A DNA stretch of 60,493 bases, filler included, from Callorhinchus milii (Eukaryota), in NCBI RefSeq assembly GCF_018977255.1. It is 4 parts of 4 records of this genome, joined end to end, with 100 filler letters (N's around TTAATTAATTAA, not from the genome) between each part and the next. Parts side by side here need not be neighbours in the genome. Positions count along the whole stretch, not along the records: positions 24,798 to 40,680 come from NW_024706063.1; 3 more parts are not named here. The stretch is one strand, 5' to 3'. How positions within the stretch are numbered: position 1 is the first letter of the stretch; each line of letters starts with the position of its first letter. A model generated the notes under the pieces. It made no database searches and was not told the origin of the DNA. It saw only the letters and a list, made by a program, of their open reading frames with translations. Positions 24,928 to 38,313 of the stretch are shown piece after piece. A program made the position numbers and the translations under genes.

Positions 24928-24966
24928 GGTTATTGTACGAGGCTTCCTATGATGTGTATCACTGTG
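24928..24966 (-). other. 23-bp-spacer RSS of supporting TCR-delta V 1
   Basis: CACAGTG-ATACACATCATAGGAAGCCTCGT(23)-ACAATAACC. Confidence 0.95.
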
Positions 24967-25268
24967 GTGCAGACTGAGTGCACAGTGATACATAGCGGAG
25001 TCTGTCAGCCGCAGGTCGGCGATGGTTAAAACGCTGATTTTCTTGGCAGTGTCAAGAGAAACAGAAATATGATCTCCAGTGGGGTTTCCTCCCTCTCCTG
25101 AGGGTTTTCTGTGGAGCAGGTATTTCAGTCCCTCGCCAGGGGACTGACGGTACCAGGAGACGCTGAAATCCTGTCCGCAGTATCCTGAATATTGGCAATG
25201 TAAATTTATCCTCTCATCAGCAACAGCAGTTTGTTCAGGCGGTGACTGGGAAACTGTATAATTGGATC
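24967..25268 (-). CDS. Supporting TCR-delta V segment 1 of NAR-TCR (leaderless, CDR1 Cys)
   Basis: Phase 1 acceptor cccgcag; SNYTVSQSPPEQ...LHCQYSGYCGQDFSVSWYRQ...LTIADLRLTDSAMYHCALSL; the nearest upstream exon-like element is a J donor, and I found no leader exon. Confidence 0.9.
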
Positions 25269-27077
25269 CTGCGGGACGCAAATTACAGTTTACTTAGAGT
25301 CATGGAATCATTGAATCTTTCAGCACAGGAAGAGGCCATTCAGCCCATTGTGTCTGAGAAAAGAGCTTTTAAAAATGCCAACCAATATAATCCCGCTCTC
25401 TCGCAAGAACACATAGAACTTTATAATTCCTTTTGATGCATGCAGCCAATTCCATACTGAAATTATCTTTCGAATCTGTTTCCACCACCCGTTGAGGCAG
25501 CACATTGCATTCAATAGGAATTTTCAGTGAAAATAAATCCTTCTGCTCTCCCCTCTTGTTCTTTTACCAATTATCATACATTTGGGTTCATTGGTGACTG
25601 AACCACTTGCCAGTGGAAGCATGTTATCCTTCTCTGCTCTATCAAAAACACTCACAGCTCTGAACACTTCATCTAAATCTCCGCTAAACCTTCGATGCTC
25701 TCAGGAGAAGATTGCCAGATTCTTCATACAAACTAATTCCCTCTGTCTTGGTATCATTTTGCTAAATGGCCTTTGCACCCTGTCCAAGGCCTTCACGCAT
25801 GTGTCCGTGAAAGGTACAAAGACAATTGTAGGGATTAATGTTACATCAACAGTGGAAGGAGCAATGGGATGTATTAAAATAGGCATTTCTTGTAGCTGAG
25901 CCATGTTTTATTGCAGACGCAAACCTTATTTCTATGACTGTATACCATTGATATGATCTCTCATAAATGAACCGTTTAATTGAGGTTTGTTTCTCTAATC
26001 TTATATTTGTTTGCTGTTGCGGTTTGTCGACATTGAGGCTTTGGGTGTCTGCGATCATGGGAATGTTTAGCAGAGAATCAGGTGTCAGGTTGTACCGTTA
26101 ACTTCAGCGCGTTTACAGTTGAAGCAAATGGAAAGCTTCTCTGCTGTAAATATCGTTACTTTAACATCGCTGCTGAGGAGATTTATTCTCTGGTTTGTTG
26201 CCAATATCAGTTTCCCTCTCAGTCTGTGGGCTGCTCATTGCAGTTTCAATTGNNNNNNNNNNNNNNNNNNNNNNNNNNNNNNNNNNNNNNNNNNNNNNNN
26301 NNNNNNNNNNNNNNNNNNNNNNNNNNNNNNNNNNNNNNNNNNNNNNNNNNNNNNNNNNNNNNNNNNNNNNNNNNNNNNNNNNNNNNNNNNNNNNNNNNNN
26401 NNNNNNNNNNNNNNNNNNNNNNNNNNNNNNNNNNNNNNNNNNNNNNNNNNNNNNNNNNNNNNNNNNNNNNNNNNNNNNNNNNNNNNNNNNNNNNNNNNNN
26501 NNNNNNNNNNNNNNNNNNNNNNNNNNNNNNNNNNNNNNNNNNNNNTTTCTTTAGGACTTTCTTTCTTTCGTTCTGTCCCTCTTTCTTTCTTTCTGTCCCT
26601 CTTTCTGTCTAATTCTTTTTTCATTCTTTCTTCAAATGTCATGGCTTACATTTTCGCAACATGCAGTGTTTTTGCAGGCTTGCATATTGACTTGCTTGTT
26701 GGTGTAGAATAAAGCAGAATTACCTGGGATCTCTCAGCGAATATGGAGAGAGGAAAGTGTGTTAACGTTTCAGGTGGATGAACTTGATTCAGAAATTTAG
26801 ACCCCACTTTTCGGGAGAACAGAGGAGGTTATTGATGATAATACATCATTTTACCCAGCTCAAGTACAAATTCATTACCCAATTAATATCAATTTACTCT
26901 GGTCATGTTCCTTTGGAACTACTGTGCAATCCAAATCAGTGACTTTCAAAACATGGAAATAAAAGTTGGTCATTTGAGAAACAAACCTTGATGTAGTATT
27001 CGGTTAGAATAATGTTTTTTGACAAACTCACGTGAATAAACTTTTATGTTAATTCGTTAGAAATGTTTCGCACTTAC

Positions 27078-27133
27078 TTTTCGTTACAGTTACTTTGGTT
27101 CCTGATCCATCTTCTGTATATTCCTCATAATAA
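27078..27133 (-). CDS. NAR-type J segment (YYEEYTEDGSGTKVTVTK), phase 1 donor
   Basis: Followed by gtaagt; the GxGTxVTV motif has D instead of W/F at the position before it, as in IgNAR J; preceded by a 23-RSS. Confidence 0.9.
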
Positions 27134-27172
27134 CACATTGACACAGCTCTCATTCAACAAGGTGCAAAAACT
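27134..27172 (-). other. 23-bp-spacer RSS 5' of the NAR J
   Basis: AGTTTTTGC-ACCTTGTTGAATGAGAGCTGTGT(23)-CAATGTG. Confidence 0.88.
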
Positions 27173-27486
27173 GTTCCATCGAGTCATGGTTTAATCCTGG
27201 CACCAAAACAAGCAAATGCAGACAAATTGTTAATAAATTCCTATACTTATACCACAGTCCCATTTCTATAATATTCGTTTGTCCAAATCATGCTTATTTT
27301 CAGTAAGTTTTCCACATAAACACAGTCAAAGCGCAAAGACCGAAGAACATATTTCTGCAAATAATTCTACAAAATATGTGGAAATAATTAATATTGAAAG
27401 CTAACTTTCGATACTTTCTGGAGCACAAAACAGGACAATGTTAGCGATGATCACGTCTCATGTATTTCCGTAAAAATTAGCAGTTC

Positions 27487-35620: not shown

Positions 35621-36527
35621 TGAGCCAATATTGCCACTGGCAATTGTACATTCTTGTATTTACGTACTATTTACCCAGCAGTATATAGGAATCCGTTGTT
35701 ATTCGATTGGCGAATCACTTTCCGAGTTAATAATCCCTCCGAAATGTGTTGGTCACTGCTATCCGCCAATCGACTAACAGATGAGTTAAAAGTTACTGCT
35801 ATTTAAACAGAGGTGTGTGGAATAAAGAAACTTGCCCATCGTTTCCCCCACCGTGAGTCGAACCCAGGTCTCTCACTGTCGAGGTGAGTGTTCTGACCAC
35901 TGAGCGACCGGACATCGCAGATATAAACTTTGAATCAATATTGGTCATTGATTGGAACATTGGCACATTGAAATACCGAACATTGGTTTGTCAGCCTGAA
36001 ACTTTAGGAAACCCATCGCCAAGCTATAGAGACTCCAAATATCGCTTCCTCGCATCTCCTCATGGAAATCACTGAAATAGTCTTTTTGAATGGAATGAGC
36101 ATTCTCCTCCCTTATGGAACTGTGCAGTTTAGCTAAATCCGTCAATGATTAGCCGCAAGTTGGCGAGAACCAAGGCTTGAGGACCCCCACATTACGCTTT
36201 GGGGTAACTGTTGCTGTATAACCAGCTAATGCCACATAGTTTCCCGTTCACACCGCCAATTCGCAGCAACTTCTTTTTTGCAGTATATTTTGTGAAGCCG
36301 TTTGAGACATCTCGAAGTCGCGATAAGGCGCTACATTAAATGTAAGATTCACTATTAATTCGTTCACTTTTTCCCTACACGAACTGTTCCATCACATTTT
36401 GCTTGTGGTTGGCAATCAGCCGCGTGTTTCCTCTGAGAGACACAGGAGCAAAGTAAAAAATGTGAATTAGGTCAACTGTCAGCATTAACATCTGTGCTGA
36501 GATGAGACCCTTTCTCTCCTCTTTGGA

Positions 36528-36873
36528 GGTTTATGCACATTGATGTAGTCTGACAGTAATACTGTGTGTGTGACGGTACAGTAATGTTTGACCATGTCAG
36601 GCAGAGCCACGGGGAACACAAATAGAGTGGATCTCTTCCTGCCCATGTACAGATTTGGCGTTAAACTTTGCGTTGCAAATTCAGCAATGAATACATCCCC
36701 CTCAGAATCATGTCTCCTTGTGTACAGAGGAGGTTCTCTTGGATACTGACGATATCAGAATATTAAAACATTGGTGCAATCAGCAGAGAATTTGCAGCTC
36801 AGGGTTACAGTCTGTACTTCAGTAACAGACATTTCAACCTCTGATGGATCAACACCGACTCCATCTCCTGTCC
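36528..36873 (-). pseudogene. TCR V pseudogene (conserved Trp TGG to TGA) with CDR1 Cys and 23-RSS
   Basis: Acceptor gctatag; VTLSCKFSADCTNVLIF*YRQYP...PDMVKHYCTVT; RSS CACAGTA-23-GCATAAACC at 36528-36566. Confidence 0.85.
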
Positions 36874-37972
36874 CTATAGCCAGAGAAAACATGTTTATCA
36901 GTGTCATACAAAGCCCGGAGGTAAACCCACTAATTGTTTTAAGGATTAGGGTGAAAGACTTAACATCAGGCACTAAAAAAGTGAATGTAACATCGCAAAG
37001 GAATTAACAGCGCAAGTGTGCTGCCCTGTTATCCACAAAGCACATAGCAACTCTAATTTGCAATCAAAATATGTGAAGAGCTTTAAGTTATACTCTATAC
37101 CGAAAAACAGATAAGGACTGTTGTTCCTTCATCTCCAGGATTTATTTTCCATGCTGGGTTGTCAAAAATTCAGCCTTGTGCTCCAACGTAGGTCAAGTAA
37201 TACCCATTGATTATCTTGACTTCATCTACTGCGAGTAACATAATAGCAATGATTGCATTTGATGGAGTGATTGTACATTTTAATCTGGAGCGCACACCTG
37301 TGTCCTGCAAAAACAGTCGTGGATCAAGAAACAAAACTATTATTTGCCAATTAGTTTTGCAGCGGTCATTACCCCAGAAAATAATTTGACAGTCGAACAA
37401 CAAACGCGTTCTCACGTACTGCAAGAAAAACAGAGGCGCGAGTATGGAGTAAGGAAACTTGACCAACTTTTCGCACTGCCTGGGATTCGAACCCATGTCC
37501 TCTCACTAACGATTAAGGTACACGTCTCCACTGACATTAAAATATCACTTTAAAACAAATCAGTGTGAAAATGTATGTAACAGCATTTCAAGTACCCGCT
37601 GTAACAAACAAAAAATTGGATTAGGCATTTTTACTGCAAAATATACAGTCAATTCAATTTAACGAATAATCTGAGAAGCGCTTTGAGAAGTCTCAATGAC
37701 GCGCTGCGACAAAAAGTCAAATGGAAAGATTATTTTATTTGTTATTTTCTTTTTATTGCTGTTAATATTAACATGCGAAACTTCCAAAAACATTTATCAC
37801 AATCTTCTCTCTGTTGGTGAAGAACATCTCAACTATACAGTAAGAAAAGTATCACACATTTTAGCTGACTTGACAAACCTCAACAAGATGTGAGCTATGG
37901 TGGCATTTGGCAGAAGGTTTGTTACATTCTCTGTCGCTAACTGTACTGTTTCCCAGCTTTGGTTGTGATGAG

Positions 37973-38011
37973 GGTTATTGTACGAGGCTTCCTATGATGT
38001 GTATCACTGTG
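37973..38011 (-). other. 23-RSS of supporting V 2
   Basis: Identical to the RSS at 24928-24966. Confidence 0.95.
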
Positions 38012-38313
38012 GTGCAGACTGAGTGCACAGTGATACATAGCGGAGTCTGTCAGCCGCAGGTCGGCGATGGTTAAAACGCTGATTTTCTTGGCAGTGTCAA
38101 GAGAAGCAGAAATATGATCTCCAGTGGGGTTTCCTCCCTCTCCTGAGGGTTTTCTGTGGAGCAGGTATTTCAGTCCCTCGCCAGGGGACTGACGGTACCA
38201 GGAGACGCTGAAATCCTGTCCACAGAATCCTGAATATTGGCAATGTAAATTTATCCTCTCACCAGCAAAAGCAGTTTGTTCAGGCGGTGACTGGGAAACT
38301 GTATAACTTGATC
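38012..38313 (-). CDS. Supporting TCR-delta V segment 2 of NAR-TCR (leaderless, CDR1 Cys)
   Basis: 7 nt and 5 aa differences from 24967-25268; same cccgcag acceptor; SGFCGQDFSVSWYRQ. Confidence 0.9.

Follow-up and report, generated by a model that had tools for sequence, protein, structure and literature searches.

The window, a stretch of 60,493 nucleotides made up of four joined parts of the Callorhinchus milii (elephant shark) genome, contains in one of its parts (positions 24798-40680, the piece analysed here) a cassette of the NAR-TCR, a T-cell receptor (TCR) chain in which a NAR variable (V) domain is joined to a second, supporting V domain. The cassette is complete, with leader, NAR V, diversity (D) and joining (J) segments and supporting V1, the last behind an intron of roughly 1.8 kb; the elements of Table 1 lie within positions 24928-38313. 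All elements are on the minus strand and follow each other in the order supporting V2, pseudo-V, V33406, V31288, NAR V, D, J and supporting V1 (Table 1). NAR-TCR was previously reported in the elephant shark (PMC1845163; PMC3964593), and the piece is an ordinary, already described two-V cassette of its TCR delta region. To judge from the neighbouring V segments and the literature (PMC3149040, PMC3964593), the cassette would lie upstream of D-delta, J-delta and the constant segment C-delta in the TCR alpha/delta locus.

Segments and recombination signals of the cassette

According to its published definition (PMC1845163), NAR-TcR has a NAR V that bears a leader and an a-b loop Cys and has lost the WYRK Trp, and a leaderless supporting V with a Cys in complementarity-determining region 1 (CDR1). 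All of these hallmarks were present in the window cassette: the NAR V carries the a-b loop Cys in REECESLTINC and has lost the WYRK Trp in MEFYRRFP, and the CDR1 Cys of the supporting V lies within YSGYCGQDF. The top single-domain matches of the NAR V in the PDB were VNARs (7s83_B with 1.7e-15, 7spp_C, 2i26_N and 1sq2_N). The NAR V is immediately followed downstream by a D and a J belonging to it, each with a recombination signal sequence (RSS). The supporting-V acceptor and the NAR J donor are both in phase 1, as are the leader donors.

RSSs, which consist of a heptamer, a spacer and a nonamer, were located by a consensus scan in which 16 consensus positions were scored. Ten RSS-like sites with a score of at least 13/16 were observed, compared to a mean of 0.36 and a maximum of 2 in 100 dinucleotide shuffles, and nine of the ten adjoin a V, D or J end, which confirms the signals read in the earlier note. 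That note had read spacers of 12 bp on either side of the D and of 23 bp at the J, exactly as recovered by the scan. All six V segments bear a signal with a 22- or 23-bp spacer in uniform direction. The best nonamer of the NAR V (ACAAAAAGC) matches the consensus at 8/9 positions with a 22-bp spacer and at 6/9 only with a 23-bp spacer; a spacer of 22 bp is within the usual tolerance of ±1. The cassette thus displays the pattern of immunoglobulin heavy-chain (IgH) loci, i.e. V 23, D 12/12 and J 23 (PMC2435157). A V-to-D distance of 363 bp given previously has to be corrected, as 390 bp separate the coding end of the NAR V from the coding start of the D and 324 bp the two nonamers; D and J are 381 bp apart. 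In addition, a cryptic 12-RSS-like site (CACAGTG-12-TCATATACC, 13/16) was seen at positions 31504-31538 on the minus strand, in framework region 1 of V31288. It is probably a chance match because its nonamer lacks an A-run.

With respect to the remaining V segments, a Pfam V-set match was obtained for four of the five V translations scanned (supporting V2 was left out), the pseudo-V being the one without a match. V31288 and V33406 are referred to as TCR-type on the basis of their leader, WYR motif, V-set domain, 23-RSS and locus context, and V33406 was 99% identical to a C. milii protein in a database search. When V31288, V33406 and the supporting V were used in structure searches, the PDB ranking was dominated by multi-V antibody constructs, which does not discriminate TCR from immunoglobulin (Ig), and database names were uninformative. 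The supporting Vs were 87-92% identical to C. milii supporting-V models in the protein collection. Supporting V2 would have the same role as supporting V1 given its splice acceptor, its 95% identity and its homologous intron, and it is probably part of a further cassette upstream, with the NAR V-D-J of that cassette falling outside the piece.

The earlier note had counted four TCR-type V segments with 23-RSSs in the same orientation upstream of the cassette. Signals and orientation were recovered for all four; the label itself does not clearly apply to the pseudo-V, since no leader was found and its Cys pattern is of the supporting type. No convincing leader was detected within 1 kb of the pseudo-V by a search that recovered three known leaders as controls. 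Its Cys residues (25/31/97) are arranged as in the supporting Vs and not as in the conventional Vs, a splice acceptor is present, and an in-frame TGA occupies the position of the conserved Trp. Instead of being a conventional V, the pseudo-V may be what is left of a third NAR cassette that has eroded.

Table 1. Elements of the NAR-TCR piece of C. milii (window positions; RSSs as heptamer-spacer length-nonamer; slashes mark exon borders)
Feature	Position	Strand	Description
Supporting V1 23-RSS	24928..24966	-	CACAGTG-23-ACAATAACC; identical to supporting V2 RSS
Supporting V1 exon	24967..25268	-	Leaderless; splice acceptor CAG/GA, phase 1; extra CDR1 Cys; V-set 3.1e-15
Assembly gap	26253..26545		Within NAR J-supporting V1 intron, in CT-rich microsatellite
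NAR J coding	27078..27133	-	YYEEYTEDGSGTKVTVTK; donor A/GTAAGT (AAA A/GTAAGT), phase 1
NAR J 23-RSS	27134..27172	-	CACATTG-23-GCAAAAACT, read on + strand
D 3' 12-RSS	27487..27514	-	CACATTG-12-ACAATTACC
NAR D coding	27515..27529	-	15 bp, CTTGACTGGGGAAGC; alignable with shark D segments
D 5' 12-RSS	27530..27557	-	CACAATG-12-ACAAAAACA, read on + strand
NAR V RSS	27882..27919	-	CACAATG-22-ACAAAAAGC
NAR V exon	27920..28205	-	Top PDB matches shark VNAR; a-b loop Cys; Phe for canonical Trp
NAR V leader exon	28594..28636	-	MSLLCVSISFLFLQ; donor T/GTAAGT, phase 1
V31288 23-RSS	31249..31287	-	CACAGTG-23-ACACAAACC
V31288 conventional V exon	31288..31599	-	Leader exon 32167-32212, leader ATG at 32212
V33406 23-RSS	33367..33405	-	CACAGTG-23-ACAAAAACT
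V33406 conventional V exon	33406..33718	-	Leader exon 34348-34393, leader ATG at 34393
Pseudo-V 23-RSS	36528..36566	-	CACAGTA-23-GCATAAACC
Pseudo-V exon	36567..36873	-	TGA replacing conserved Trp; supporting-type Cys pattern; no Pfam match
Supporting V2 23-RSS	37973..38011	-	Same as supporting V1 RSS
Supporting V2 exon	38012..38313	-	Leaderless with splice acceptor; 95% identity to supporting V1

Segment spacing in seven cartilaginous fishes

Loci for comparison were found via homology of two-V gene models in Carcharodon, Heterodontus, Amblyraja, Pristis, Scyliorhinus and Chiloscyllium. Spacers of 22 bp at the NAR V, 12/12 at the D and 23 at the J were present in all six species, and the distances between segments were nearly the same as in C. 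milii (Table 2), ranging from 380 to 391 bp for V-D and from 374 to 405 bp for D-J. The measured spans were 27078-27920 in the window and 10484-11270 (L001), 10467-11278 (L002), 8491-9272 (L003), 8487-9263 (L004), 8482-9264 (L005) and 8464-9237 (L006) in the other loci.

Table 2. Distances between NAR V, D and J segments and length of the D in seven species (bp)
Species	V-D	D	D-J
C. milii (window)	390	15	381
Carcharodon	391	15	380
Heterodontus	390	16	405
Scyliorhinus	390	15	377
Chiloscyllium	380	16	377
Amblyraja	391	16	374
Pristis	382	15	379

The RSSs and parts of their spacers could be aligned across species. The DNA between the segments was unalignable between the chimaera and Carcharodon or Heterodontus (global identity 0.46-0.48), and BLAST matches were limited to the RSSs and the J. 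Near-invariant spacing without conservation of sequence suggests a constraint on the distance between RSSs, perhaps of about two nucleosome repeats. Heptamers varied by species: CACAGTG was present at D 3' and J in the five elasmobranchs other than Chiloscyllium, and various heptamers occurred at V and D 5'. Being common to the six other species, the RSS grammar and the spacing of about 390 bp are, on sequence comparison, an ancestral and conserved design of NAR-TCR, and hence a family trait not restricted to this locus. What is new here is that RSS spacers and segment spacing are compared explicitly across seven species; the RSS grammar of NAR-TCR is said to have been drawn already in the 2006 description by Criscitiello et al.

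Two further observations were made in the elasmobranch loci. In several of them, the supporting V is followed by tandem copies of its 23-RSS (L005 13337-14000, Scyliorhinus canicula; L002 17126-17290; L001 18826-18930; L004 10974-11080). In Scyliorhinus a 61-bp unit, with CACAGTG-23-ACA(A/G)AAACC in every copy, is repeated 10.9 times; an array of this kind is absent from the elephant-shark window. Moreover, L001 15457-15795 (Carcharodon carcharias), between an unrearranged NAR V-D-J and the supporting V, holds a NAR V-D-J exon that is already joined in the germline, is open and bears a GTAAGT donor of its own. Judging by the NCBI models P0036 and P0037, joined copies may occur in tandem in Carcharodon and Heterodontus.

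Proposed cognate joining and its alternatives

The cassette is very probably a self-contained Ig-type minilocus in the TCR V region in which cognate joining is favoured. In the proposed mechanism, the NAR V would join the D via its 22-bp RSS and the D would join the J, all within about 0.8 kb. Phase-1 splicing would then link the rearranged NAR VDJ exon to the supporting V, which would separately join D-delta and J-delta through its own 23-RSS. Cognate partners would be favoured by proximity and by being accessible together within a small transcribed unit (about 1.6 kb), and protein-level selection may contribute through the proposed pairing of the a-b loop Cys of the NAR V with the CDR1 Cys of the supporting V. 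Both the order and the confinement of these rearrangements are inferred. The nearest empirical precedent is provided by the IgH miniloci of the nurse shark, whose segments are spaced by about 400 bp and in which partial rearrangement took place within a minilocus in 96 of 97 cases (PMC2435157). The conserved spacing described above is circumstantial support for confinement by proximity and accessibility. The earlier suggestion that a short V-to-D distance might restrict joining thereby gains indirect support, as the spacing has been kept within about 10 bp in seven species, although the DNA in between could not be aligned between the chimaera and the two sharks compared.

Several points weigh against this interpretation: (i) confinement by proximity is an analogy; (ii) rearrangements in trans between Ig V and TCR-delta D are reported to be common in sharks (PMC12227049), hence long-range capture of foreign V segments with 23-RSSs does happen in shark thymocytes; (iii) the RSSs of the conventional Vs, with CACAGTG heptamers and good nonamers, appear at least equal to the signal of the NAR V; and (iv) C-delta, D-delta and J-delta are absent from the piece, so that the locus was assigned by context and literature.

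The earlier note had proposed that any upstream V segment might join the NAR D and J, resulting in chains with two conventional-type V domains or, via supporting V2, with three V domains. Such joins are indeed legal under the 12/23 rule. Each of the four upstream 23-type signals, located 3.7, 5.9, 9.0 and 10.5 kb away, converges on the D 5' 12-RSS, and the joins would consequently be deletional. Given the phase 1 shared by leader donors, NAR J donor and supporting-V acceptor, an extra V-D-J exon, made with either supporting V2 or a conventional V, would be frame-neutral. A direct join of the NAR V to D-delta, which had likewise been put forward, is also allowed by the rule because the NAR V signal fits the 5' 12-RSS of D-delta; the underlying statement that TCR D segments are of the 12/23 type agrees with the literature (PMC3457774). 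The rule further allows non-productive inversions, by pairing of the D 5' RSS with the J RSS or of the D 3' RSS with a V RSS. Such inversions are known to be infrequent in IgH loci.

The unorthodox chains are a legitimate, testable hypothesis permitted by the rule, with a low prior probability. That cross-cassette joining is real, with conventional V or supporting V2 joined to the NAR D-J to yield either TCR-V/NAR-J domains on supporting V1 or three-V chains, and the NAR V joined to D-delta, is considered unlikely. Legality, convergent orientation, distances of just 3.7-10.5 kb, matching exon phases, the consensus-like RSSs of the conventional Vs and the frequent use of TCR-delta D by Ig V in sharks (PMC12227049) speak for it. 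The near-complete restriction of rearrangement to single miniloci in shark IgH (PMC2435157) speaks against it, as do two features of the segments themselves: V31288 has no partner for the CDR1 Cys of the supporting V, and the NAR J carries DGSG instead of the conventional F/W-G-x-G. No protein combining a TCR-V, NAR J and supporting V was present in the public protein collection, which holds gene models and not repertoires, and the supporting-V-containing proteins recovered had either a supporting V alone or a NAR V followed by a supporting V. Since several of the models are visibly artificial, the silence of the collection on hybrid products is weak evidence. We know of no cross-cassette chains reported from surveys of nurse shark delta cDNA. 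A further scenario, in which an Ig-type minilocus has kept its segment spacing of about 390 bp for more than 350 million years without conservation of sequence and, given its place among RSS-compatible Vs, a minority of thymocytes joins conventional or supporting Vs to the NAR D-J to give tandem conventional-V or three-V delta chains, a receptor format undescribed so far, appears very unlikely.

Multi-V chains, if they exist, might alternatively arise by splicing, through the chaining of symmetric phase-1 exons in read-through transcripts. Both the NAR VDJ exon and the supporting-V exon are symmetric in phase 1, P0036 and P0037 chain two germline-joined NAR VDJ exons before the supporting V, and the position of the joined exon of Carcharodon between an unrearranged cassette and its supporting V would fit. 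However, P0036 and P0037 are automatic gene models and not validated transcripts, and unrearranged supporting V exons have neither J nor donor and therefore cannot serve as internal exons; this route is regarded as highly improbable. Many gene models read through an RSS (e.g. 'NTVMGL' in P0051) or chain exons artificially. In the Ensembl model P0006 of C. milii a conventional V leader (MRLFAVCLV, as in V33406) is joined to a supporting V by a cryptic acceptor, which reflects either an error of annotation or the splicing of a read-through transcript to the supporting-V acceptor.

As to the means of confinement, the earlier note had also considered the non-consensus heptamers. In the window, partner RSSs share heptamers pairwise (CACAATG at V and D 5', CACATTG at D 3' and J) and the neighbouring Vs have CACAGTG or CACAGTA, a pattern that might be taken for a private code beyond the 12/23 rule. 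To our knowledge, pairing by RAG does not need identical heptamers, and the pattern is not conserved, given the CACAGTG at D 3' and J in the five elasmobranchs mentioned above. Furthermore, a massively parallel assay of 12-RSSs placed CACAATG and CACATTG, when combined with favourable spacer starts, within its top ten heptamers (PMC9723617). A heptamer-based restriction is thus not borne out, and a private code is most improbable and not thought to be responsible for confinement. By the standards of the same assay the D 5' signal (CACAATG-TT) looks strong and the spacer start of the D 3' signal (CACATTG-GA) would be unfavourable, as would that of the NAR V (CACAATG-CC) if the rule for 12-RSSs carries over to 23-RSSs. 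The heptamers and spacer starts of the neighbouring Vs are CACAGTG-AT or CACAGTG-CT; hence the cognate V has no advantage in signal quality. If confinement is real, proximity and shared accessibility are its more likely source, in analogy to the IgH miniloci.

Flanking features and comparison with known systems

The intron between NAR J and supporting V1 contains an assembly gap, which is crossed by no reading frame. Its left flank (26053-26240) aligns with 38900-39087 in the second copy of the cassette, its right flank (26546-26632) with the CT-rich repeat at 39165-39300 of that copy, and positions 26932-26983 with 40455-40507. Order and orientation are unchanged across all three matches, i.e. 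the flanks are collinear with cassette 2, which is consistent with continuity. The same self-alignment places the NAR J of cassette 2 just past the end of the piece. A G-rich 46-bp minisatellite (39551-39958; 9 copies, 88% matches) is present in the J-to-supporting-V intron of cassette 2 and missing at the equivalent place of cassette 1. A tRNA-Ala(TGC)-like sequence was found at 35089-35159 on the plus strand (Rfam tRNA, 40 bits). Further tRNA-like stretches were noted by eye at about 30330-30420, 31080-31150, 33010-33080, 34200-34270, 35840-35910 and 37460-37520; they look like related tRNA-derived copies, resembling short interspersed elements, that are dispersed among the V segments.

The closest known system is NAR-TcR itself, as described in the nurse shark (Criscitiello et al. 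2006) and the elephant shark (Venkatesh et al. 2007, PMC1845163), which shares the leader-bearing NAR V with a D and a J of its own, the splicing from the J donor to a delta-V that has no leader but a CDR1 Cys and a 23-RSS of its own, and the tandem arrangement of cassettes; nothing essential is different in the window cassette. The shark IgH minilocus (PMC2435157) has the same signals (23-type at V, 12-bp spacers on both sides of D, 23 at J) and the same spacing of about 400 bp, which in both cases results in a whole VDJ unit of less than 2 kb, and the behaviour expected from it is rearrangement within the cluster. In contrast to that minilocus, the window cassette has one D instead of two, lacks constant exons of its own and sits inside a TCR translocon, where the 23-RSSs of the surrounding Vs are compatible with its D as well. 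In marsupials and monotremes, TCR mu (PMC3457774, PMC7615758) is organized in clusters and likewise forms a chain of three domains, in which a supporting V carries an N-terminal V that is unpaired and somatically diversified. It differs by its independent origin (VH-related V) and its separate locus with own C, and in marsupials the supporting V is germline-joined. Finally, in Ig V-TCR-delta D trans-rearrangements and in VH-delta and TAILV (PMC12227049, PMC3457774) the 23-RSS of a non-TCR V joins the 12-RSS of D-delta. They are a precedent for the proposed join of NAR V to D-delta, although the documented products are single-V delta chains.

Two natural T-cell receptors with three domains are known, and NAR-TCR, one of the two, is central to the debate on whether single-domain V regions appeared first in TCRs or in antibodies. 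That signals of the IgH type and the spacing of Ig miniloci occur in chimaeras, sharks, skates and sawfish supports the view of an ancient Ig-like rearranging unit inside a TCR locus. The most useful by-product of this analysis is the evidence from seven species that points to constrained segment spacing. The joins proposed in the earlier note offer a natural test of how V(D)J recombination is confined where the 12/23 rule is silent, be it by RSS sequence, distance, accessibility or protein selection. If cross-joins exist, they would represent new receptor formats; if they do not, the cassette would be a compact model for control beyond the 12/23 rule.

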